A stretch of DNA of 64,000 nucleotides from Lepidodermella squamata (GCA_047495785.1 JBLDXI010000015.1:434001-498000); one strand, 5' to 3'. Shown: positions 3,050 through 59,200, counted from the first letter of the stretch. Program-made: numbers and translations. The notes: a model not told the origin generated them from the letters alone.

Positions 3050-4510
3050 TCAGACAAGTAACGAGTACAGCAGATTGAGAAGAAGGCCTTTTATTGCAAA
3101 ATCTATGTTGCAATCGGCCGAAGAGTTCCGCTCCTCTGGATGGTCATGATCTTCACCGGCAGCCGTCACAGGCCCGAGTAGAGGTAAATTGCCACTAAGT
3201 TCTCCCTCAAGATCGGGCTTTCGCGTGAAATCCCGGTCAACGAATCGCAAAGCAGACAGGAAAAAGTGCTTGAAATTCGATCTTAGCCTTGTGACGACGA
3301 AAAGAGTCCCGTTGAAGAAAGTCATAGTCGGCAGGAACCCAGTTAGCCCTCGCTCAGCGATTTCATCCCCCGTCCTCCGATTTATCGCCTTAATCTTTTC
3401 ATGAAAACCAAGAAAAATCACATCTCTCGTGAAAAGAGCTGCGACAAAGTAACTAGTCCTCGGGCCGTACGACCTTGCAAATCGGCCGTTGTTCGCATTG
3501 TAGGCACAGAGGGCGCCTTTTTTCTCCGGATCACAGTCGGTACTGAAGGTGAAAATCGCTTTCCCATCATGAGCCATGAAAACCGGCGGATATCTCAGCG
3601 CCTCCATTTTCCAATTCCGCCACTCGATTCGCCTGGCTGTGATATCTGTTGTAGTTAACTGGCAGGTTACAGCGCTCAAAAATGGGCAAATTAACGTGCT
3701 GATATGGCTAGGGTTAGTCGGCGACAGCAGAGGAGCTGGGTCTCGGCCGTGGTTCTTCTTAGTTGCCACCCCGATTTTCCACAAAATCGTACCATTTTTC
3801 GGGTCAAGCTCCACCAAATGTATCTCGGCAAGAATGAAAAACCGACCATCCCCCGTGATCACAGGTAGGTAAGGATAATTATTGAGTTTGACAGAGAACA
3901 ATTTCAAACCACTTTCAGATGAATAAGCTTCGACCGTGTCGTAGCATAGCGCATAAATCACCTCGTTGTAATACGTCAAAGGCAGGGCGCTTAGATACTT
4001 ATCATTGACACAGATGCGGATTTTCCAGTCAACAATGCCGAAATCACTGAGAGAAACAGCCATAAGCCAGGCTTTATGCGGGGATCCGAACATATCAACC
4101 ATGAGTGTGTAGAGCTCTGTCTCATCGTCCTTGATAGCTGGTTGCGAGAATTTCTCCTCTTTGTAGCTGGGCTCGAAAATTTCATAGAGTATCGTCCTAT
4201 TCAGTTCAAGGCCCGTATTCGCATCGAAAACAATCAATTCACCAGCGCTTTGCTCCAGTATGTAGATTTTGCCGTCTGAAGTTATCAACGGTTGGCTTTG
4301 ATCGCTGGTTTGAACATAACGCGGCTCGTCGCTTGTTACCAGAAATTCAGTCAGCCAGATTGCGGCTAGATTCGTTAAATGTGACGATTTCTGGGCCACT
4401 TCACTGCGGTAAAATGATCGGTCCAACCCACCAGCGTACTGTAGCCATGGTTGTGGCTGCTGAGCATTGATGTTAGAAATGAGAAATGTCACAAAAATTG
4501 CTAGGATCAT
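3050..4510 (-). CDS. Secreted, probably GPI-anchored PQQ/BamB-like beta-propeller protein (paralogue 2), intronless, 486 aa
   Basis: Colinear similarity to 893..2308 (PWLQYAGGLDRSFYR, SQPLITSDGKIYILEQSAGEL, ICPF...CQLTTT, CAYNANNG). Signal peptide and hydrophobic C-terminal tail. Confidence 0.75.
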   Translation of the reverse strand: MILAIFVTFLISNINAQQPQPWLQYAGGLDRSFYRSEVAQKSSHLTNLAAIWLTEFLVTSDEPRYVQTSDQSQPLITSDGKIYILEQSAGELIVFDANTGLELNRTILYEIFEPSYKEEKFSQPAIKDDETELYTLMVDMFGSPHKAWLMAVSLSDFGIVDWKIRICVNDKYLSALPLTYYNEVIYALCYDTVEAYSSESGLKLFSVKLNNYPYLPVITGDGRFFILAEIHLVELDPKNGTILWKIGVATKKNHGRDPAPLLSPTNPSHISTLICPFLSAVTCQLTTTDITARRIEWRNWKMEALRYPPVFMAHDGKAIFTFSTDCDPEKKGALCAYNANNGRFARSYGPRTSYFVAALFTRDVIFLGFHEKIKAINRRTGDEIAERGLTGFLPTMTFFNGTLFVVTRLRSNFKHFFLSALRFVDRDFTRKPDLEGELSGNLPLLGPVTAAGEDHDHPEERNSSADCNIDFAIKGLLLNLLYSLLV

Positions 4511-6600: not shown

Positions 6601-7985
6601 ATGGGGGAAAATTGTCTACATCTAATCTACATCGTAGCGTTGCTCCTGTATATGTGTTGCGAGAGCCAAGGTCTGACATCGCCTCTAAATGATACTGGAA
6701 ATTCGACTAGCAATTTCAGCTCACTTGCGATCTCGGCCAGCGTGTTAAAGCGAAACTATCTGAACTACTGCCCGCAAGTTTTGTCGAAATCACTACCGCT
6801 GGATGCTTTGTTTTCCAACATGTTCAAGTCACCTATGAGCGTTACAGTTACAATGGATATGTATCGCATGATAGCCATCGATGATATGCAGCAAAGGTAA
6901 GTTTGTCCTAATTAGGAGACTAATACTTTACAGTCAGGTATTTCTAAGCTTATCTGTCTGGGCGATTATATCAATGACTTGGTTCTACCCTTGCGACCCG
7001 ACATCTTGTGCGAATTTACTCGAAAACGAAACGATTTGCAATGCCGCCCAGTATAGCCTGTCTGAGAATGAATATTCTTACGTCATGTCTATTTCCATGT
7101 CAAACAAGGACGTTTGGGTGCCCCAATTTGCTCACATGAATGCTTTAGAATTCGCCAGGCCGTTCGAGAAGTTAGTTATATGATCGGTTGTAAAGAGATT
7201 TCTAGAATTATACCTGCTTCAAAAGGCTGAGCAATGGCATAGTCTACTTGACTTTCCCCGACAGCGGAGCGTCGTATTACTCGATGGGACGCTACGACAC
7301 AATTTGCGAAGAGTTCCCGTTCAGCAAATTTCCGTTCGACTCAATCAAATGTTCGTTCATTTTCGATTCCGAGGAAGTCGCGGCATATCTTAGCTACAAT
7401 TTGAGCCGATTCGCAATCGACGAATCAGCCGCGGATTCCTTTCTGTCCAGCGCTGATGTTTGGGATCTAATTTCCGTGGATCAGCCCAGAACTACGAAAA
7501 CTTCGCAAAATGCTGGCGAATACAGCTTGACCCGGATGACGGCAACTATTTCCTTCAAGCGAAGATCGAGTTATTTTGTGATAAATATAATTTTTCCTAT
7601 CTACGCACTGTATTTAATGCAACTCGCTGCTTTGATTATGCCACCTGATGTCCCAGATCGATCTGGTTTTGGAATTACCGTAGTTTTAGCCTTCTCTGTT
7701 ATTTTGTCATTCGTTGTTAGCCAGATACCACGAACTTCAGAGCCCGTCTACCTTGTTTACTTGGTCACGTTCAAATTTGCCTCAGGCATGGTGATTAATA
7801 TCTATCAACTCTTATCTTTGGCTGTCTTTAGTGGTTACGACGGATCCTTTTGTAAATCTGTTGTAGAAGTTGGTCGATTCAAAGTTACGAAACCTAGGCT
7901 AGTTGATGCTATCTTTTCTTTAAGCGTTATTCTTGTCACTGTTGTAGCCGATATATTCTTCATTTCGCTTATGATGATGATTTGA
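6601..7985 (+). CDS. Cys-loop (pentameric) ligand-gated ion channel subunit, divergent nAChR/5-HT3-like; exons 6601..6896, 6949..7170, 7226..7985
   Basis: Signal peptide, VWVP (loop A), C..FPFD..C Cys-loop, RRSSYFVINIIFP pre-M1/M1, M2 followed by IPRTS, M3 and M4. Introns of 52 and 55 nt restore a single frame. Confidence 0.85.
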
Positions 7986-8443
7986 ATGCCTTGAACCATC
8001 TCGATTGCAAGATCTCAGCACTTCACTATTCACTCAAAACAGAGTTGAATGAATGAGTTGAATGAATATATAGGCCATAGATTATTAATTTGGCCTGATG
8101 TTATTGCAATCTGTCTTGCGACGCGATTTCATGCGTGGTAATTAATTTATTTGCGAATCAATATACATGACTCACACGAAAAACGTTTTGCTTATCGCTG
8201 CTTGTAAAATTATCATCGTTTTATCATTTAAATTTTTCCATGACGATAGAACTGATGGCTTAGGTACTTATGTATCACCGGGTATCGAGCATCTACGTTG
8301 CTTCTCATCAACCTTAATTGGAACCGATCACTCATTACTATCTAAAAGGCCGACTCTTCATTCATTTATTTGATCGTTTTCATGATTAAAAAATTCTTGA
8401 AAATTGAAAGAAACATGAGTTTGCAAGGCCTGAAGGTCGTTGA

Positions 8444-11400
8444 TTACAAAATAGTACAGCTCGAACCCTGAGCCTCGATATCATAGCGGATTTCATTACC
8501 GCTCAACAAATCCATAAGTGTTACATTTCTTGCTCTCGCCGCTATGTCCAAAGCTTCGTCTCCAATTTCTGCGCCATGTTGCAGCAACAATTTGACAATA
8601 TCAACATGGCCACCGTCACACGCCAACGTCAAAGCAGTCCATCCCTTTCTACTCCTTGTATTCACACTTGCGCCAGCTTCTTCCACTAAAACACGTGCGA
8701 TTTCAGTGAAACCACTAGTTGCCGCTATCATGAGCGCTGTGTTGCCCATTTCATTCGCATCATCAACATTTGCATCTCTTCCAACCAGCAACGCCACAAT
8801 TTGATAGCAACCGACATAACTCGCGAACATCAGCGCTGTATTCCCATTCTCGTTCCGAAAATCGATACAAGAATCGTCTTGATCGACCAGAATCTTCGCG
8901 AGATCGACACGGCTATTTCTCGAAGCCCAGAGGAGGGGAGACCAGCCATTTTTGTTCTGAACGGCTACTTTGGTGCCTTTCTTCAATAAAACACGGCAAA
9001 TTTCGATATGTCCGATATAACTAGCCGCTGTAAGTGGGGTATCGCCATTCAAATTCGCAGCATTCACATCAGCCCCGTGATCCAGGAGCAACTTGACCAC
9101 GTCGAAATGACCCAATTGGCTTGATAAGATCAAAGGCGTATTGCCGCCTTCATCTCTAGCCTCGATTGTGCTCTCATCCAATTTCGCCAAAATCCTTGTT
9201 AGAGCTTTCAGGTCAGCCTTCCGAGCTGCATGGAGTATTTCCAGATTTTTACCGCCTATCGTGCCCAATCTGGCCACTTCCATTAGTCCAGATGGCCCTG
9301 ATTCACGGATTATGTCATGCTTCTTCGTGATTAAAAGAGCCAGTTTTCTCGAGTTCCCACAGCAGTAGGCTTTTTCGATAGCTTTCTCGTACCAATACTC
9401 GGAAACCTTGCCTCCTTTTTCGATCAAGTAATTGACGACCTCGAATTCGTCATAGAAAGCTAAAGTTAGCTCCAAAGCGTTAGCAACGTTCATTTTGTTG
9501 ACCAGGCTTATATCCGCCCCGTTTTCGACTAGAAATTGGACCAGTTCAAGCCTCCCAAGTCTTGCGGCTTCAATGAGAGGGTTATTCCCTTTCAAATCGC
9601 CTATTCCAAGGTTGCATCTCGACCTGCCAGACATCAATGCTCGAGCAACCTCGAGGCAGTTATCAGATATTACGCATTTGATCATGGCCGTTTCTGATCG
9701 ATCGTTAGTTGCATCAATCGGGAAATGATTACTATCGACCAACACCTTCACAATATCAGCATTGCCATTTTCACAAGATAGCATCAGACCGTTATTGCCC
9801 TCAGAATCACAGGTTTGAAGGAAGGATTTGACCGGGATTTCGGAGATAAAAAACCGTACAATCTTGCTACAACCGAGCTTGCAAGAAGCGAGAAACACAT
9901 TTTCGTACCAATGCCTCCGGTTTTCAACCAAGGTTTCGGAGACGTAATCAAGCATCGATTTGCCGGTATCTTGTGACAGGAATCGCTCTTTGGCCACTTT
10001 AACATTTGACGCGAAGCTCACCTCGGCTAATTTGCAGAACAACTCTGTGGCTAGGGATGTTTCGTTTGATTTTCCTTTTCGGATCAGCCAATTTTCGCTG
10101 TCGATAGATTTAACTAGATCGAGAGCTGGGAATGTTTGATCCCCGGGTTTGCCTAGAAACAACGAGGAAAGAACCTTGGACTCCATGCTTGAAATCAGGA
10201 TCTCGAGTAGCTTTAATCGTTTTTGCTCAATGGCTTTGGCGAGAATGTTGAAACTAGGAGATCCAAGAATAGCTGTCCTAAGCCTGGACTCTTCGCTGCA
10301 CTTGAAGTCAATTCGCGCTGTATCTGTGGCCAATTGATAGAAAACCTCGTTAAAGCTATAATATTCCGGACTATCTAGTCGACCGTAACAATGAAGTGCA
10401 GTGGTTTGAATAGCAATTTTACAGTACTCAGCGACTTCATGTCGGCTCAGGTTCCAAAGAATTGAAAGATCTTCCGTAGCGACAAATTCACCGGGTTGAA
10501 AGAGCAGGAATGTGAAGAGGATTTTTCGAAATTCAGGTTTTCGAAACTCAGCGGATGAGGCGAGAAGGCTTGCTGTTATCATCACGGTCTTCGAGTTTGC
10601 ATTGCTAACAGGAATCATAACAGATATCGGAATGATCTTCAGATAGAGATTGCTGAGTTCGGCCGGATCTTTTGAGCATTCTTGGAATAAATGCCTCATG
10701 ACAGCTGCCGCTGCTGGAGATCCTTGGCAAATACTGCCCAGCCTCTGATATTGGCTTGTTTCCAATTTTCTCTCGCTGTATTCCTGCTTCAGGAAGTCGA
10801 CCAAGCTTGGATTGTCAAGTTTTGGTATCTCCAGATACGAACTCGGGAATCGATCGATAGAGAAGCCGGCGAATCGCTTCTCTCGAGCTAGAGCAATGCA
10901 ATGAATATTGAGTGAACCAAAGCTGAGTTTCGAAACAGCACGCAACACGCCATGGCTGTAGACATCATCCAGAACAATTAGAAAGCTGGAGTTTTGCTTT
11001 TCAAAGCAATCGCGAATAGTTTTCGGATCAGCTTGATGGGAATCAGTTTGAAACCCGGCTTTTATTAAAACGTTTGTCAAGCTGGCGTAGAGAGATGCTT
11101 CATCGTACTGAACTGCTTTTGAAATTTCTCGGACATTTAGCCAAATCACGAGCTGGGCTTTGCTATCGAACAGTTTCTTTTCGTGCAAAATGCTATTGAC
11201 CAAGACGGTTTTTCCTAGCCCAGCCTCGCCCCATATAACGAGAGAGCCTGTTACCCATCGGGATTAGGTCTAACGAATTCAAGCTAAATGTTAATACCTG
11301 ATTTTTTCGTGAGCAGATTAGTTATAGCACCTCTTACAAGATCCTCCCGTTCAGCATGGCTGAAGTACTGCGACGGAAGAGCTGGGAAAAACCCCACGAA

Positions 11401-12022
11401 CTTCAATCTGAAAGGGCAAGTCATAGAAGTCCTGTTAGCCTTGAAAATAGTGAAACCAACCTGTCTTGAGCTTCAACAGGCAAATTTGTAGGTTCCTCCG
11501 TTGAGCCGTTACGATCAGCTTCAGTTATCACGCAAGGCTCAACAATTAAGGTCTCTTCCTTCTTCGATTTAATAATTTTGAGCTGGAAAAAACCTAAGAT
11601 TAAAACCATGGATCCTGTATTTTGTTTAAAGTTATTACCACTGCGGAAGAAGTTTGTTCGAGGCTAAGAAAAGCTTTCGAAAACTCTTCTGCCTCATTTT
11701 CGGATATGACCTGGGCGATTTGGTATGATAGCCACTCTGCTAGAGGAGCGTTGTATCTTTCAACGACGAGAGCTGCCAATACCAAGCTGGCATCTTCCCC
11801 AGCCGCTAGAGAATCGCACAGAACTCCACGGAGCTCAGCAGCTGTTGTTGCATCCTCCTTAGAAATCGTTTCCAACAATTCTTGCGTAAAGTGGGTTGAA
11901 GCCAACTGATAAAGTGCGTCGTCTTTCGAGAAGGATTTTAGCTCCAAGACCAGCCTCTCCACATCGAAGTCCTGTCTGCTTCTAAGATTCGCCAAGATTT
12001 GCCCAAAGCCGGAACTAACCAT
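8444..12022 (-). CDS. STAND NTPase: putative CARD-like domain + NB-ARC (Apaf-1/CED-4 type) + ankyrin repeats + C-terminal CaaX (CTIL); exons 12022..11639, 11582..11461, 11407..11298, 11247..8444 (1139 aa)
   Basis: Three GT-AG introns (56, 53, 50 nt) give one frame. Walker A GEAGLGKT at 11230..11207, Walker B FLIVLDDV, GxP motif ICQGSP, about 10 ankyrin repeats (GNTPL/GDTPL/GNTAL..A...GH). Protein ends in CTIL-stop. Start codon is the first in-frame ATG; an upstream exon is not excluded. Confidence 0.85.
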
Positions 12023-13979
12023 GAAATTTTGGCATTGCAAGAAGATCTATCACACTGGATGTAGAATGTGTCTTGCTCTTTGTAACTATCGCCTTAAAAT
12101 GTTTCGTAGCCTAGTATTGCGCTCTTTGATCCGTGGTTGCTAACCGAGAATAGCTACGCATCTCTATCTGATAAATAATGCATCAATGTGGTGTATTACT
12201 TCGATACGCAGTAGCTCATCGATTTAATGCGTTCGTTTCTTGAAGCGTAGCATCTCGGTGGTATCACTGCTCATAATGAGGAGGTGTAATTACGGAAAGC
12301 TCGAATAGCTTTGACGCAGGTGAAGGCGTTACTAGGATACACTCGTTAAAGAAAACAAAATCGTGGCAAGAGAACCGGAGCAAAAGACAATTCACGCACA
12401 TTCAATGTTTATCCAGAGATCTGCATTGGTTTCCTGTTTCCTGCGGATGAAAACGACTGTTCGAGAAATTTAGTCAGACAGCCAGTCGTTTTTCGATAAC
12501 CAAAGCAACAAATTTGATGATCTGCTTGATTCATTGATTATCTCCAATCTCCAAGCTCACAACGAAGTCAATCGCAGAAATCGACTTCTAAGCTATTTGC
12601 ATTCCTCATCCGACTTCACTTGTGTCCGGATAGGTTGACTACCCATTTGTCGATTTGAAATTGGTTAAAACAGACAAAGTAGTGGCTTGGCTGACGAATT
12701 CATTTCTATTGTGTTACCACGTTTTGCCATGTGCATGACTTATACAGTGCTTATGTATGAATGAGTCATGCATATAACAAAGAGTGGTCACACTACATTG
12801 AACAGAGAAAATTTCCCAGGTTCTCAAACTGTAAACAACAAGTTTAACAACACCTGACCCAGGCTCTTTAAATGCGCCTTCCACCAAAGAATTCCAATTA
12901 ATTTATGTGGAAATAGCTATTTCCTCGATTTGCGTCTTCACCGCCTTTTCTACATCACCTCGAAGTGATCAAAAGGCATATTTTTTTCTGTCATAAAAAC
13001 AAGTCTTAATCAATGTCCGAGAGCATTTGATTCTTTCAAATTTTCTTTCGGGTTTGGGTAAGAAACTTTCTTTTACTTCGCGTCTCCTTAACGGTGATGA
13101 AATTAGGTAACTCTGAACCGCGTTAGTTAATAGCTTCGATAACATAGTTTCTGAATTGTTTTCAATTAAGCCAATTTAAAATTATTTTGTTCAAAATGAA
13201 AAAAGCTGGTAGAGATCCAACTACGGCGTAGCTCAAGGTCATATGCCCATCAAATGATAACCATCATTCAATATAGTTTTCAACTACGATTCGCAAATCT
13301 AAAATCGCAGCTTGATTAGTTTAGTATTTAATTTAGTATTTAAGTTTCCGTGAAAGTAATGAGAAGCATGCACGAGTTCGCGTGTGTCGATCTTCAGACT
13401 GATTTATTAATTTTCTCAGCAATTTGACAATTTTATTATTTCTGGTTTGAGAAAGATTCGAGCTTGGAAATGAGTCTAAAGTGAAGTTCATATAGAATTT
13501 AGCTATCACGTGAGGAACACGAGTTAAGGTATCGGCGTAGATAACTGCTGAAATTATGCACACGTGATTGAGATTGCCCTGGGTCAGATTTTGCGTTACA
13601 ATGTTAATACCAGTTGTCCTCTTTTTGGCCGCGTCCCAAAGGACGCGAAGGGGCATTCCAAATAAACCAATTCCCACGACGTTTGATAAACCAGTCTGCT
13701 GACTGATTGCGATCTCACTATTACGCCTGTTTTGAAATTGTGTTATGCTCTCTGATGACTCATGCTGCAGTGTAATTTTTTGCCACACATTGATGATAAA
13801 CGTGGTAGAATACTAAAATAGCTGAAACACCGTTTTTTATCGCGCCGTTATTATGCATGATTCATATTAATTTGATCCGGCTAAATTTCTATGTGCACAC
13901 GCTAAATTTCGTCATTACAACAAACTTGCGTCATAAAAACCAGCGAATCTAACAAAAATTGCCCAGAGTCAATAATATA

Positions 13980-33581: not shown

Positions 33582-36500
33582 TCAGTAAACCAGAATTTCA
33601 GCAAATTGAATCTGCATCGGGCCGACTTTATCAATTCGAACATATCTACCAAGAATAGGCGGTGTACAATACAATGGGAATGATTGCCCAGGAATATAGT
33701 TCGGCATTTGATAACCCCGAAAAAAGTCGCAAATTGCATTGTTAGCGCCGTTAGCTGAATCTCCAACGCGAGCTGTCAAATCGAAGCTAGATGCCGTTGA
33801 GTAATCGATCGCGTTTCCAGAAGCTACTGGAACTATTTTCGATACTAAAATCGATTGACCCAAGTCAACCTGAAACCATAGACTAGCAGCATTTGGCTGC
33901 GTATTACCGGGCAAAGCGAACGATCCATCTGTCAGCCCAGCGTCAGTCGCGGTATCAAAATTCGAGGACGTAACTTGCTTAAAAAATGCGAGATTCACAC
34001 TTGTTTCAATGCTGACCTCGACTTTGCAAATCATCATATCTAAGCCACGACCTTGCTGGACTATTGTGACGTATCGACCTGATATAGGCGGAAAGCAAGG
34101 AATCGAAATTTTAGCATCGAAAGGCACATTAGGCTGGGCAGCATTGTTACAAACTGGCAAAGCATCAGCATCGCTCGCTTCACCTGCTGGTATATTGTTC
34201 GAAACAGCAATTTGTAGCCCTGAAATCGGAGTTCCGACCTCGGCATAGCTGCAGCCCTTGAAACTGAATCGACCAATCGGCTGAAGGACGAAATCATCGA
34301 CATACTGATGAAGCGTTGACAATGGCGTCGTTGTCATACAGCTCAACATTGCAAAATTGATCTGAATGTTCGTGGAATCGAAATTGGATTCACTGGAACA
34401 CCTTTGAAATTCAATGCAGACAAAGTTCAGGGTTCAGGCACGGCACCAAAACAAAAAGTACCTAAAATACAGCAAACACGAGGAAACAGCGGATGTTTCT
34501 ATTTCTGACATGACAGCAAAAATGCAATGCATCTTTTACAAAGTAATTGTTGCCGTCTTTGCTGCGTTGGGTATTCGCTGTCATGGCCAAAGGCCATGCA
34601 CAAATTTAGAATTGCTGAATAGTTTGGTGAACGGGGTGAGAAAATGGAATAACGGTATTGTCTCATATCTCTCATCAGTAAACCTTTATTTGTAGGGTTT
34701 GATTGATGAAACAAACTAAACTCACTCGGTTACTTCCTACCGTCAGGGATTTGGCTGATGGCGTAGGAATGCAGTTGCTGAATGTCTGAGAAAGGACGAA
34801 GAAACCGTCGCGATAAACTGAAACGCGATGATTGCCGAGCGTAAAATCTACGTTCACCACATAGTGCTGCCATATATCGTGTAGTTGAACTACGGGCTGC
34901 AGATCCGATGAGGCATTCGAGAACATCAAAGCGTGGATAGCGATCGTGTATGACGACATCGGGGCAACCTTATTGTAGCCGAGGTCGTAACTGATCGGTA
35001 TGCTACTCGCTGTCAAAAAGTTGCTATTTTGATTGGAGAAACGATAGGCACCTGAATCACCAGTAGCCCAGGGAAAGTCAGGAGCCCGACAGAGTTGGCC
35101 CAATTGCAGTAAGAATATTGCTGCTGCTATCGACAGACGATAAGCCCAAGTTTAAATCGAAAGGAGTCACGAAAACGGCTTTCAATTCCCTCGGCGAAGT
35201 GATAGGACAGCGTTTCAAGGATTTGGCGAATTTTTGACTCTGAGCAATTTGGTAGAAGACCAAGCATGCATAAGTGACCGAGGCACTGCCGACGCCTCCG
35301 ATTCTAAAAAAAGATGTATTCGTTTGAAGACCACTTTGGTTACAGCCGGCTGTAACTGACGCTATCAATTCGCCCTCTTGAACAAAGTATACGTATACGG
35401 TATCTTTAGATTGGTCGTAGATGAAGCCAATGAAACTCCATTGATTTAGCAGTATTTTGAAAGGCGACGTTACGGTTTTTCTAGTGGCGTTTCCGACGCA
35501 TGAAAAAATCGCTTGAGCATACCCGCCTGCCGATATACCTAAACCGACTGTGTATTGGGCATCTGACGCCGGCGAATCGAGCCAACCGAGTAGGCCGCCG
35601 CCAGTGCTGGACGGTCGAACGTGAATTAGAAGCGAGAGAATCTGAGTTAGTTTAGCTGCGGCGGTTGAGATGAACAAGTAGCTTGCGGTTGAGGTCAGCT
35701 TCCAAGCCCTGAACATTATAATGAAGATTATAATGAATCATCCTCAATTTGCTAATGTAAATTATTAGAATAATTGAATAATTGAACTTTCAGCTATAAA
35801 AGCAATATCCCTGTTCAGCTTTGCGATAGAAGTTATGAAAATTAATTCTTGATACACACTGATCTGAGAGGACCGGACAGAGTTCAATTCAAATTGAAGT
35901 TCAAATTATCGCGACACATGGAGATCTGATTATGAAACATCGATGCAAATGTCTGCACATTAAGGAAACTTTTGACTTCAGTGGTAGTTTGTCTTCCATT
36001 TTTCTTTACAAATTCAGCAATTCGACCAAATCAAAACATCTTCCTGTGATTCAGTGAGGTTAAATCTTACTCACGTTTTGGTGTAGCTCATAATTTTATC
36101 GCACACCGGGCTTCCAGCTGTTGTGAAAACAGAGCTCGTATTGACGAAATCTCCAAGGGAGCAGGCAAGCGGGAACAAGGCAGCTGGGGGAGGAGCTAGA
36201 AATGGCATAATAGAATACGAAATTTAACGCAAGCATGCAATCACGTACGGGTCCACATCGACTGCGCTGCTTGCTCGATTTCATCGTTTGCTAGCGCCCG
36301 TTTGTATATCTGAACATTCGCCAGCTTGCCGGTCCACGAGCCGCCAATAATCAGGTAGGCGTTGATTTTTAAGGTTGTTGCCTGCTGGTTGCAATCGATG
36401 TAGGCGATGCCAACATCTACGCGATCGATGTAAACACGCGCAACCTTAGCTTGGCAATCAAACGCGATTGCAAAATGGCGCCAAGAATTTTTCGGTAATA

Positions 36501-38523
36501 GCGCTTCATAGCCCATGCCCGTTGCATTCACGAATAACGCGCTATTGACGTTACAGCCTCGTGCTCGTTCTACCAATATTTTACCAGTATCGTTGATAGA
36601 AATTCGCAAACATTGGATAAAACTATAAAATAGAATCATATTTGCAATGCTGTTGAGGTAGAAAGAATATCGTTCTTACTTGTCCTGGTAGGATTCGAAT
36701 AGCACCAAAGTACCGGCTGTGTGCCATACCCAGGCTGCAAAGGTCCAGCCATATTGCTTATCGACAGCCAGGTTATCCATAGGCAACAGAAGTCGGCCAA
36801 ATCCAGTCCACGCGAGGGCTGAAAGTGGCCTGCCATCAACGCCCGAGCCATAGGTCAGCCCGTTCGAAAAAACTCCATTATTACCATTGCCACTCAGATC
36901 ATCAGCCCGATGCATGATATCTAGTGGCCAATAGCCATCGGGCACCAAGGTGAATCTAGGGTCGAGCTGTGGCGTGGAAACCTCGACAGAAGTCACAGTT
37001 TTAGCCTCGCCCAAATCAATGGTAACATAAGGTCGGTCAAGAAAATTCAGAGTACCGTAATTAAATTTGGTACAGTTCAAGAAACTTTTTTCGCGTATGA
37101 TTCGATTAGCCGTAACAGCTGAGGAATTTGCGAATCCTGAGAGAGTGCTCGTGTCTTCAACATAGGCCTTAGCTATCCGGGCTTTGAAAGCTAAATTGGG
37201 ACTGTAACGCGGTATATTTTTGCAGCCAAGAAGCTCGACCTTGTAGCAGCGAGCTGAACCCGAATAGCCCAGTGGATCAATAGCAATAAATTTAGCTAGC
37301 ATCGGCTTCGGAAATACGACCGTTGTTATAGTGGCTGAGTCAGTATTTCCCACCAAGACCGTTTTGCCATTATTTTCTTGAAACTTCACCCAGTTGCCGT
37401 AAGACGAAGATTTGTACCTCAAACCAAAAAAAGTCACCCATGAATTCAGTCGATCACAGCCTTGAAATTGAACAGCAGTTACCAATGTTTGCTTCTTGAG
37501 GTCGATAGTTAGCGACATTGTGTTTGCGAACGAGCCCATGCCCCAATTCAGCCTCGAGTAATACGGTCCAGCAAGGAAACGATCAGTCGAAATTTGAGAA
37601 TCTTCAATTTCCATAGATTCAATGCCAAGAGGTTCGAAACACTGAGCTGTTGTGCCTTTAAAGGCCAATCTGCCTTGACTTGAATACGGCGGCGTTCGCG
37701 TTTCTGTCACGCTTGATACTTTCACATAGCGTGTCAAATGCGGTCGGAACAATCGGTTTATTGTTGTTATCTTGTACAGGGTACCGAACATAGCAGGATC
37801 TCCGTGGCCTCTGTTAATCTGGTAGAAATTCAGCCCGTCGAAACTGTATTCGATTCTCAAGTTTTGAAAACAAGCTATGCAGTAGAAGTGAAACTCGGTG
37901 AGCCAGACGATTCGCTGAAGATCGACCATTATCCAAGCACCAGCTGCCTCGTTGCTAGCCAGGCCAAAATAGTAAATGTGCCGTGCGTACAGTCGTCCGA
38001 ACATAGCCATTTCCATTGGTGGATTCGTCGAAATTGCTGAATACGCCAGATCGTCCACGTAAGAATTATCGTAGTCGAGAATCTCGTCGTCCGATATATT
38101 CTTCATCAAACTAGGCGAAGTCCAAGCTGACTTCAAAACATCCCGCCACAATTCAGTCTCGGTACATTTGGTCGATTCCGAGGAGCATTTCTTCGACTTT
38201 TTCAACAGGCCATCAGAAGATAAGGAGAATGATGTTGCAGTTGAATCATTCACAATCTGAGCTATTTGCGAGCTTGGAACTTCGAAGCTCCAAAGCAAAC
38301 ATGTGGTCAATTTGAATTGGCCAGACTTGCACGAATCGATGGAATTACAGAGAGCCATGCAATTAACAGCGAGTTTCACGTCACTGGTGTTGCCAATTAG
38401 GAATGTTGATAGATTGTAACCTGGCGTTACTGCAGTTACTGATTTCCCGGGGTAGATGTTGTAGTGGTAACCTCCGGCAACCACCGAGGCTATCAAATAC
38501 AGCAAAATAAAACTTTGCAACAT
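33582..38523 (-). CDS. Large secreted mosaic lectin-like protein: signal, PAN/apple, F5/8 type C (discoidin) x2, partial F5/8-like, LamG/pentraxin-like x3, C-terminal fucolectin/F5/8-like; one apparent frameshift near 35085
   Basis: Motifs CMALCNSIDSCKS (PAN); WIMVDL, CFEPLGIES, AVQFQG, VELLGC (F5/8); YWPLD..DDLSGNGNNG, WRHFAIAFD, NVQIYKRAL (LamG); WFQVDLG, GRYVRI. GT-AG introns link the ORFs except at about 35085, where two frames overlap without an intron. The last intron boundary is uncertain. Confidence 0.75.
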
Positions 38524-56210: not shown

Positions 56211-59200
56211 ATGAATTTTATTTTGATACAAATCTTAGCTTTCCTCCTATCACTGCAGGGAATAAAAAGCGAAGAATGGGTGACTTATCCTGAGTTTTTG
56301 AATAAGTTGCCCAGCCAGCTTGATGCTTCATTCGAATTTTCCACGCAACTCATGGGCGAATGTGCCGCAACGTGCGAACAATACGGTGATGTTTGCAGCA
56401 GTTTTGCATTCAGTGAAAAGCTACGGACTTGTAAGCTATTCGAACATCAGAATTCGCTAAAGCCTGTTCCGGATTTGGCAATCGATGTTGAAAATGGCAT
56501 GTTTTCCATGTACTATCGCGTAAAGATTCTCCCAGCTTCAAATCTTCACCAAATGATTGATATTTTGTAAAATAGAAAACATGGTGCCCATCCGGCTGGA
56601 TAGCAGATCCAACCTCGCAAAACTGTTATCTCATGAGCTCGCAAGCATCGTCACGGCTTCTCGCTTGGAAAATGTGTGACGAAGCGCACAGCTCGGAGCT
56701 CGTAACGTTCCAATCGGTGGAACAACGCGATGCTTTGTACGATCTCCTGTATGAAAACTATCCACAAGTCCCCAAATGGTGGACTGGTTATGCTAAATTT
56801 GACAACACGCTTTGGCCAAGGCCCGTGGAAGGTAAAAACTTGCGTAAAACTTTAGACTTGGGGCGAGGGACCGATATTTGCAAAATTAGGAGTGATTATT
56901 GATAATCGAACCGGAAGGATTCTAGCAAAGGTATTTGACAGTTTTTCTTGAAACGTTGCCTTAGACTGTTGGTTGCGGCACCACCTATTCCCATTGGCTT
57001 CATATTCCTTGTCTTTTAATTTTCCAGAATTACTCGGTTTCGTAAAGATGCGAGGTGACTGCCCAGGTTCAAACCTATTGCCAGTCCCCATAGCAGCGTC
57101 GCTGGAAGAATGTGCTGCGAAGTGTGACAAGTCGTTCAAGGACAGGTGCGTATCATTCACGTACAACGATCGTACTTTCGAATGCTCACTGAAGTTCAAA
57201 ACTTGCGACGTTCCGACCGGCACTCTAACTGCTGATCTTTGGACCTATGAGAAGACATTCGACCGCCGGCCGCCATCTGTGGAGATCGGCGCCCGTTTAC
57301 CTCCCTATATATATTCGCCTGTGGTTGGTATGAGTCGATATGCCTGTTATCAGCTATGCCGCAGCCGGCCGGATTGCGTGGGCTTTCTTCACGCCCCTAG
57401 CGACGGCAATCGATGCATATCTTACCGGGGTATAGGCACTAAAAACACAAGTATCCCCGAAGATCTGCTGCACTACATCACGGACATTGACAGCCCGCCC
57501 TGCGTTAAAGGCGTTCGATACCACGATGTTTGCCTCATACTGAACCGCGTGTCGTTGACGTGGGTCAACGCACATGCTCAATGCCGGCAGATGGGCGGTA
57601 TGCTTTATCGGCCGGTTGAGCACAGCCAGAAGTCGCTGGCAGCGTACGCCATGATCAGCAGAGGCGGCAGTACAAATACGATGCATGTTGACTTGACCGA
57701 TGCCGATGTTGAGGGCACTTTTCGAACTTATTACGACAAGGAAGACCTTGCCGATCCAGTTTACGAGAAAATGGCCTACCGCGCTGGGTAATGAAAATAA
57801 AATAATGTGTTTTTATTTGTTTCCCAAGCTCAGAATTTGGGATTCAGAATGTTCTGCATTTTCACAGTTTCGTTACTTTCTCGAATGTTTTCGTCAGAAT
57901 GTTTTCGAGGATTATTACTTTGGAATGTTGCATCATTCCAAATGAATTGATACTCAATAACCAGCTCGCATGGAACTTCAAAAATCGGAAACTGATAATA
58001 ACTGTAATCATGTAATTTCGTTAATCCAATGCCTTCAGCTGAAAACATTACTGATATTTCGGCTCTTTTTCGTTATTAGCAGATATACCAAATAATTTTA
58101 CCTCGCATGGTCTGGCTAATAACTTGAATAAATTCTCCAATAGATACACCAATATGGGAACCACTCAAAACTGCGCTCGGATGATCACCCCCGCCGCAGG
58201 CCAACTACCCGAAACCGCGTATCTCACGGATGGAATCTGCACCACAGGTCGATATTTCTATTGTGAGACGCGTAAGTCGTTAGCTTGCAATCTACCACTA
58301 ATCGTATTCGAAATGATTCTCACACTATTTCAGCTACATCTCAATCATGGCCTACGTTGTGCCGCTTCACCCAGGCAGGATCTGAGTACATGGGCAAGAT
58401 GTCGCAGACGATATCAGGAGCGCCATGTAGAAATTGGGCCTTGACCTCTTACGCATCGCAGTGGCGCGACTTCCCAGAACAGCACGTCGATCACTCGTAC
58501 TGCCGTAATCCCGACCCTTTTATCAGCCAAGATGGCGTGTGGTGCGTCCGAGATGACACTGGTGACATCGAAGCTTGTGATGTCCCAATGTGTGGTAGGT
58601 TACATTTTTCCAACAGGTTTACCCACTATCATTTCTGTCATAATCATATAGATGAGTCTGGTTGGAAAGATGACGAAGATGTGTCCAGCAACTCGTTCCA
58701 ATATGCCACTCTGAGCTACGACCCATTTCAGAACAACAGTTACAGCTGGACGGCTGAAACTCTAACTGGCTCAGCGAATGCCATATGCTCGATGCCCGCG
58801 AAATCATGTACGTGGAGAGTAGTGCCGGGTTTTCTCAAACGATTTTCGGACATTTGGGCTTTCAAACTTGTTTCCTTTGTTTTCTTATCAAGGGTGTGAA
58901 ACATACTACCGAGGCAGCTGTTACAAAATATATCGCTTGATGCGAAACTACACGGATGCTGCTGCGATTTGCGCCGCGAATTCCTGGCATCTAGTAACCA
59001 TAACTTCGCACGAGGAGCACCTATTTCTCAGCGGCTTGGTTTTCCTCTATGCCAGTGTGTTTAGAAAAAATCCCACTAAGAAATCTCAATAACTTTTAAT
59101 CGATGCTGTACAGGGAGAAATTCAAGCCCAAACAACGGCTATTACATGGGCCTATCGGGCACGATTCCGGATAATTACTCTTGGGATAGCCTCGAGCCAT

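Follow-up and report, generated by a model that had tools for sequence, protein, structure and literature searches.

A predicted Apaf-1-type NB-ARC-ankyrin protein with a candidate C-terminal prenylation box in Lepidodermella squamata

We asked whether a 64,000-nt stretch of the Lepidodermella squamata assembly (GCA_047495785.1, JBLDXI010000015.1:434001-498000; hereafter the window) encodes an NLR-like receptor that could be tethered to membranes by its sensor end. The question is raised by the minus strand at 8444-12022, which an earlier reading of the sequence alone had taken for an Apaf-1/CED-4-like protein with a death-fold N-terminus, an ankyrin sensor and a C-terminal geranylgeranylation (CaaX) signal, an arrangement unfamiliar to it among animals. 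As judged from the DNA, the locus is a single intact gene, with four exons, of an invertebrate with short introns; its predicted product is a STAND (signal-transducing ATPase) protein of 1139 residues. We are very confident of the domain order, and we consider it probable that the whole is best explained as an intact gene for an Apaf-1-type NB-ARC and ankyrin switch with a C-terminal lipid anchor.

The gene is easily overlooked in part. A mechanical listing of open reading frames (ORFs) returns a frame of 919 amino acids (aa) with a TTG start (8444-11203, minus strand), and because the Walker A motif precedes the first ATG, GTG or TTG, such a listing hides it; GEAGLGKT does lie just upstream in the same frame, as had been noticed. 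The three short introns proposed to link this ORF to a helical N-terminus also held up: they are of one size class (56, 53 and 50 nt), each has GT..AG ends and a pyrimidine-rich acceptor, and their removal restores the frame. Joining the four exons (Table 1) gives a coding sequence of 3420 nt, with 1139 codons and one terminal stop, whose start at 12022 is the first ATG to follow the upstream stops. Codon log-odds trained on exon 4 were positive for the other three exons in the proposed frame alone (+0.27, +0.25 and +0.12 for exons 1, 2 and 3), and were negative or about zero in introns and flanks. The spliced protein aligned without gaps to the related sequences P0007 (both NB-ARC copies), P0008, P0001 and P0004 from residue ~175-197 into the P-loop; since this alignment crosses the exon 3/exon 4 junction, exon 3 encodes a conserved pre-P-loop segment (PaLPsqyF...). 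We count the gene structure as given by the sequence, and infer that splicing follows it in vivo. An Rfam search of the window gave no match, and a scan of the 5' flank for prokaryotic promoters and terminators, which is not relevant to a eukaryotic gene, stayed at background level.

The core of the protein is an NB-ARC module spanning residues ~170-654 (nucleotide-binding domain, helical domain, winged helix and arm). Pfam NB-ARC (PF00931) matched with 47.6 bits (E 1.7e-12; cut-off 23.5) when Walker A was included, against 22.1 bits, under the cut-off, for the 919-aa ORF alone; an overlapping NACHT match was weaker (28.8 bits). Walker B (LIVLDDV), the GxP motif (CQGSP) and the ankyrin repeats follow in the order previously described. 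An alignment of the window protein with its metagenomic relatives (A1) keeps the P-loop, hhhhDD, GxP and an LW(N/D) winged-helix motif, and the sensor-1 Arg is retained as well (ALAREK, aligned to Apaf-1 LTTRDK). When the A1 profile was compared with all PDB sequences, Apaf-1 came first (E 9.5e-18, over Apaf-1 residues 133-465, comprising the nucleotide-binding domain [NBD], helical domain 1 [HD1] and winged-helix domain [WHD]), with tomato NRC1 (6e-7) and CED-4 (2e-6) as runners-up. An AlphaFold (AF2) model of the nucleotide-binding oligomerisation domain (NOD) built on A1, of moderate confidence (predicted local distance difference test [pLDDT] 62.6, six sequences), gave the same answer in Foldseek, where ranks 1-6 were Apaf-1 entries (E 2e-11 to 1e-9, top 2.3e-11), followed by plant NRC proteins. 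Apaf-1 is the nearest relative among solved structures by both sequence profile and predicted fold, which supports the earlier reading as far as the NB-ARC core is concerned.

One regulatory residue of this core is altered. The winged helix is present (SILWN...), and Apaf-1 LHD aligns at FNE (YYSFNEVF), which places Asn at the position of the MHD histidine. In the corresponding columns of A1 (~490-500) the relatives read VHP, LHE, IHQ and VHE, with His in four of five; P0004 also has Asn. The MHD histidine normally contacts ADP, and in plant NLRs changes at MHD often loosen autoinhibition. With His replaced by Asn, resting-state control may therefore differ from that of Apaf-1. The substitution qualifies the mechanism and leaves membership of the fold standing, and the evidence supports an Apaf-1-type NB-ARC with a single regulatory change.

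The C-terminal half of the protein is ankyrin (Pfam Ank_2, E 8.1e-70; Ank, E 7.1e-56), with no WD40 and no LRR match in the Pfam scan. A hidden Markov model (HMM) of the repeat, made from clear copies, placed ~12-14 repeats, divided between a block at residues ~655-825 and another at ~875-1122. A tandem-repeat search at the DNA level found no repeat in this region, so the array is old and diverged, with no current homogenisation or amplification.

Relatives of the protein are few and distant. An exhaustive HMMER search of 1.84 billion representatives returned eight hits in total (E 1e-13 to 1e-8, best 25-28% identity), five of which were NB-ARC or NB-ARC-ankyrin ORFs from ENA metagenome assemblies (P0001-P0005, at loci L001-L005); no cnidarian or placozoan NOD sequence was significant in this search. 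The contigs of these relatives are eukaryotic and animal-type, with short introns and genes for CEP104, Ddi2, a chitin-binding domain and a K+ channel, and two of them carry NB-ARC-ankyrin genes in tandem. Word-indexed protein searches with the NOD region, exon 1 and a family profile returned nothing, or plant NLRs at E>1e-6, and scans of JGI metagenomes with exon 4 and exon 1 found no relatives. In the literature we found no description of an NB-ARC-ankyrin gene family of this type for rotifers or similar animals. The tandem NB-ARC-ankyrin genes lie at L003:2-988, L005:3-578 and L005:2149-3588. We also observed that the ankyrin products of these tandem genes end in a Ser/Thr-rich stretch followed by a polybasic tail (...RKHRRRK, ...VRKARRK, ...VRKGRRK), a conserved C-terminal signal of another kind that might be a nuclear localisation signal or a membrane-binding patch. 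On a contig with the relative P0011, an ORF at L002:8390-8953 has a Pfam Atthog domain. We presume that this domain is linked to the Athena retroelements of bdelloid rotifers, and take it as a lead, and nothing further, on which animals carry this gene family.

Contigs of a public DNA run (X1) covering 8300-12200 contained two versions of the locus. In the NOD and the N-terminal exons the two diverge by ~11-12% (111 differences over the 895 nt of 10445-11339, for example), in the ankyrin part (8658-9823) by merely ~1%. They may be diverged haplotypes or homeologues, or gene conversion may have acted on the repeat region. Indels within exons (+3, -3, +3 and -2-1 nt, the last adding up to 3) all keep the frame; one of them adds 3 nt to exon 2 of the second version, at 11544. 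Past the stop, indels of +2 and -5 nt (at 8423 and 8392) break the frame, which argues against coding sequence downstream of it. Intron 1 has no fewer than 13 substitutions in its 56 nt, and a partial list of differences shows intron 2 to be more densely affected than exon 3.

What would tether such a protein is its last four residues. The codons read TCG AGC TGT ACT ATT TTG TAA, that is, SSCTIL-stop, in direct agreement with the sequence-only reading. CTIL, at the C-terminus given by the gene model, to which an AATAAA ~75 nt past the stop lends support, fits the rule for geranylgeranyltransferase I (GGTase-I), with Cys at -4, Ile at a2 and Leu at X. A polar Gly/Ser linker leads up to the box, 13 residues past the last ankyrin helix, and the tail is polar and presumably flexible. 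In human OAS1 p46, CTIL is a proven prenylation box, in which mutation of the Cys abolishes activity (PMC7612834; also PMC8357416), and OAS1 p42 given CTIL alone gains membrane localisation and prenylation-dependent antiviral activity (PMC7612834). As a motif, CTIL is competent for prenylation in principle; whether this protein is in fact prenylated, most likely through geranylgeranylation by GGTase-I, we regard as an evenly balanced question. The proposed CaaX signal thus stands as a canonical GGTase-I motif identical to that of OAS1 p46, and does not extend to the distant relatives L001, L002 and L005, which end ...ARLLQ, ...ENGAH and ...VRKGRRK.

The N-terminal domain is the least familiar part of the protein. 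Residues 1-128 had been read as a CARD or other death fold, and none of five tests gave a signal for one. No Pfam family matched at E<=10. A phmmer search of the PDB returned no death-fold chain, with chance-level matches to MCM3 (0.039) and caspase-7 p20 (1.7). A single-sequence AF2 model was all-helical, with eight helices at low confidence (pLDDT 48.7), and Foldseek found no match to this low-confidence model below E 0.5. Language-model neighbours (Atlas features), none of which reached the recognition threshold, were bacterial hypotheticals and DUF5071/HEAT-like clusters. Homologues of exon 1 were absent from the word-indexed collection and the JGI metagenomes, and ORFs upstream of the relatives L002, L003 and L005 are unlike the domain, two of them being tails of upstream ankyrin genes. 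Given the lack of signal in all five tests and the poor model, we regard the CARD as unproven rather than refuted. The orphan domain is a candidate new signalling module.

Several points weigh against the combined reading of an intact, lipid-anchored STAND switch. For the introns and the 3' end, none of the public sequencing runs on record as RNA contains the locus; a candidate RNA run (X2) yielded sparse contigs, short and chimeric in appearance, none of them joined across an intron, and neither confirms nor refutes splicing. For the switch, there are the moderate confidence of the NOD model and the Asn at the MHD position; for the output step, an N-terminal domain without recognisable relatives. 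The other points concern the tail. No close orthologue in which the CaaX box might be conserved was found in the word-indexed and JGI metagenome searches, which speaks against a selected role of CTIL, and a consensus-like donor (AGCG/GTAATG, 8500/8499) faces possible acceptor AGs at 8431-8430 and 8397-8396, use of which would replace the tail. No second membrane signal lies near or upstream of the Cys (no polybasic stretch, no extra Cys), no relative with a readable C-terminus (L001, L002, L005) ends in CaaX, and chance CaaX-like ends are expected, by an estimate from residue frequencies, in ~0.1-0.3% of proteins, or tens per proteome. These last three observations favour a protein that is the product of the same gene and works by the same STAND switch in the cytosol, with CTIL as a chance or lineage-recent tail that is unprenylated or has no functional role. 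That CTIL is a validated and portable box (OAS1 p46, PMC7612834), placed on a flexible polar tail past the ankyrin cap, speaks against it, and we see a cytosolic protein as a serious contender with somewhat less than an even chance. The N-terminus opens another route, in which residues 1-128 are a divergent CARD or death fold and the protein is a membrane-tethered, caspase-activating platform like Apaf-1/CED-4. The NB-ARC is nearest to Apaf-1, a helical N-terminus of ~100 aa on an animal NB-ARC protein is often a divergent death fold that escapes Pfam (a placozoan study termed such domains 'death-like domains' and found them hard to detect; PMC6321704), and in the low-confidence model the lengths of predicted helices 3-8 are compatible with a six-helix bundle. 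Against this stand the silence of Pfam, PDB phmmer, Foldseek and the language-model neighbours, a domain of 128 residues with eight predicted helices, where six over ~90 residues would be expected, and a ~40-residue linker before the NB-ARC that is unlike Apaf-1. We consider such a caspase platform unlikely.

Two further explanations question the gene itself. Exons 1-2 could encode a small helical protein of their own, as the exon 2 frame stays open for 13 further codons to a TGA at 11421-11419, with a separate NB-ARC-ankyrin gene starting from the ATG at 11424 (MTCPFRLKFVGFF...), whose first letters overlap that stop (ATGA) in the exon 3 frame. Homology to the relatives begins at residue ~175, and the two parts are joined in no RNA, as this would have it. 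Yet an overlapping stop and start is foreign to eukaryotic gene arrangement, in our partial list the two versions differ more densely across intron 2 than across exon 3, and intron 2 has GT..AG ends, a pyrimidine tract (TTGCCCTTTCAG) and an exactly restored frame. Because this intron has the canonical form and falls in the size class that all three share, we rate two genes as very unlikely. The locus might also be a pseudogene, one copy within an expanded family that is not expressed or is in decay, which would fit the missing RNA and the replaced MHD histidine. We hold this to be extremely unlikely: the frame is intact over 3420 nt and four exons, all catalytic motifs are kept, and every exon indel between the two versions is a multiple of three.

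If the lipid-anchored STAND switch is the right reading, its working can be sketched by analogy. At rest, the ankyrin array and the winged helix would keep the NB-ARC shut on ADP. A ligand or a modified host protein bound to the ankyrin array would permit nucleotide exchange, upon which the NB-ARC would oligomerise as a ring and gather the N-terminal domains as the signalling output. Were CTIL geranylgeranylated, its sensor end might hold the resting receptor at endomembranes, where OAS1 p46 and the guanylate-binding proteins (GBPs) are also found; endomembranes are proposed because no second membrane signal was found. We infer this switch, and a role in immunity or cell death, from related proteins, and an 'apoptosome-like' function is likewise meant as an analogy. 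The fullest version of the proposal is a first NLR-like STAND receptor anchored by a C-terminal geranylgeranyl on its sensor end, patrolling endomembranes and oligomerising on the membrane surface, with a new output module at its N-terminus and a large, undescribed invertebrate NB-ARC-ankyrin family behind it. We put this forward tentatively, and it is rather doubtful that all of it will hold.

Table 1. Features of the NB-ARC-ankyrin gene, in window coordinates (residues are those of the spliced protein)
Feature	Position	Strand	Remarks
Exon 1	11639..12022	-	Residues 1-128, helical N-terminal domain; presumed output/effector
Intron 1	11583..11638	-	56 nt, GTAATA...CCAG; 2 in-frame stops
Exon 2	11461..11582	-	Residues 129 to ~169, charged linker
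Intron 2	11408..11460	-	53 nt, GTTGGT...TTTCAG
Exon 3	11298..11407	-	Residues ~170-206, pre-P-loop start of NB-ARC (FFPALPSQYF...)
Intron 3	11248..11297	-	50 nt, GTATTA...AACAG; exon junction backed by homology
Exon 4	8444..11247	-	NB-ARC remainder, ankyrin region, tail, stop
NB-ARC nucleotide-binding domain, helical domain 1, winged helix, helical arm	9902..11247	-	Exon 4 first part, residues 206-654
Walker A / P-loop GEAGLGKT	11207..11230	-	Residues 212-219; G, G, K invariant in A1
Walker B LIVLDDV	10961..10981	-	Residues 295-301; L..L.D invariant in A1
GxP motif CQGSP	10715..10729	-	Residues 379-383; Apaf-1 CKGSP aligned
MHD-equivalent FNE	10346..10354	-	Residues 504-506; Asn at His position
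Ankyrin-repeat region	8498..9901	-	Residues ~655-1122; presumed sensor
17-residue tail NEIRYDIEAQGSSCTIL	8447..8497	-	Follows last capping helix (...LMDLLSG)
CaaX box CTIL	8447-8458	-	Frame end SSCTIL-stop
TAA stop codon	8444..8446	-	Direct reading
AATAAA, likely polyadenylation signal	8364..8369	-	~75 nt past stop; direct reading

Other genes share the window. At 7248-7985 (plus strand) lie one or more exons of a Cys-loop ligand-gated ion channel (weak Pfam Neur_chan_LBD and Neur_chan_memb matches); this gene converges on the NB-ARC gene, with the ORF ends ~460 nt apart. An uninterrupted 486-aa ORF at 3050-4510 (minus strand) has a PQQ_2/BamB-like beta-propeller match (29.7 bits); the domain is of bacterial type and the ORF has no introns, and in an animal genome such a gene might have been acquired horizontally. 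The ORFs at 33582-34349 and 36676-38523 (minus strand) and at 56973-57791 (plus strand) include some with F5/8 type C (discoidin)/NedA-like galactose-binding domains and one with a PAN/apple domain, and probably belong to secreted lectin-like genes.

In most well-studied animals, Apaf-1-type NB-ARC proteins are single-copy apoptosis adaptors. With Apaf-1 of human and mouse (PDB 1z6t, 3sfz, 3shf, 5juy) the window protein shares the NBD-HD1-WHD core, its P-loop, hhhhDD, sensor-1 Arg, C(K/Q)GSP and winged-helix ILW motifs, and the general layout of N-terminal output domain, NOD and C-terminal repeat sensor. The sensor differs, with ankyrin where Apaf-1 has two WD40 propellers; in Apaf-1 and Dark such propellers bind cytochrome c. 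No CARD can be recognised in the N-terminal domain, Asn replaces the LHD His, and the ~40-residue linker before the NB-ARC and the C-terminal CaaX have no Apaf-1 counterpart. Canonical animal NLRs (NACHT-LRR) differ in another way, as the window protein has NB-ARC over NACHT and no LRRs.

Similar architectures occur in repertoires of cnidarians, placozoans and fungi. Acropora digitifera has NACHT and NB-ARC proteins with ankyrin, TPR, WD40 or LRR repeats and death-fold N-termini (Hamada et al. 2013, as summarised in PMC4083563), and an NB-ARC expansion has been described in placozoans (PMC6321704). Common ground with these lineage-specific expansions are an animal NOD, varied N-terminal effectors and non-LRR repeat sensors including ankyrin; the window protein differs in that its N-terminal domain is an orphan, and the two reports mention no lipid-anchor motif. 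The suggestion that the arrangement is new to animals therefore goes too far with regard to a NOD joined to ankyrin, which is already known from corals (PMC4083563); no report of an NLR-like protein with a CaaX box was found in the literature searched. Fungal NLR-like STANDs share the tripartite effector-NOD-repeat architecture, with NB-ARC found mainly with TPR, ANK with NACHT, and a small fraction combining NB-ARC and ankyrin (Dyrka et al. 2014, PMC4986451). Fungal repeats are often near-identical in DNA, whereas those of the window gene are old and diverged, and the gene has short spliceosomal introns of animal type and animal gene neighbours. The metagenomic relatives P0001-P0005 have the same NB-ARC-ANK order on eukaryote-type contigs, some in tandem, but are very distant, with no CaaX at readable C-termini and no similar N-terminal exon upstream (L002, L003, L005). 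A lineage that joined an Apaf-1-type module to ankyrin sensors and varied N-termini would represent a further independent 'NLR-like' repertoire in animals, beside those of corals and placozoans.

Known STAND proteins are placed on membranes by N-terminal acylation, palmitoylation or lipid-binding patches. The predicted prenylation of the window protein finds its parallel elsewhere, in OAS1 p46 and the GBPs, where a C-terminal CaaX sends a cytosolic sensor to endomembranes (PMC7612834, PMC8357416). The tetrapeptide of OAS1 p46 is identical, and the folds are different, these sensors being a nucleotidyltransferase or dynamin-like GTPases and the window protein a STAND ATPase. If true, a prenylated member would mean a new membrane placement for a STAND receptor and a conceptual tie to the prenylated antiviral sensors; at present the value of the locus is that of a clean, intact and testable example.

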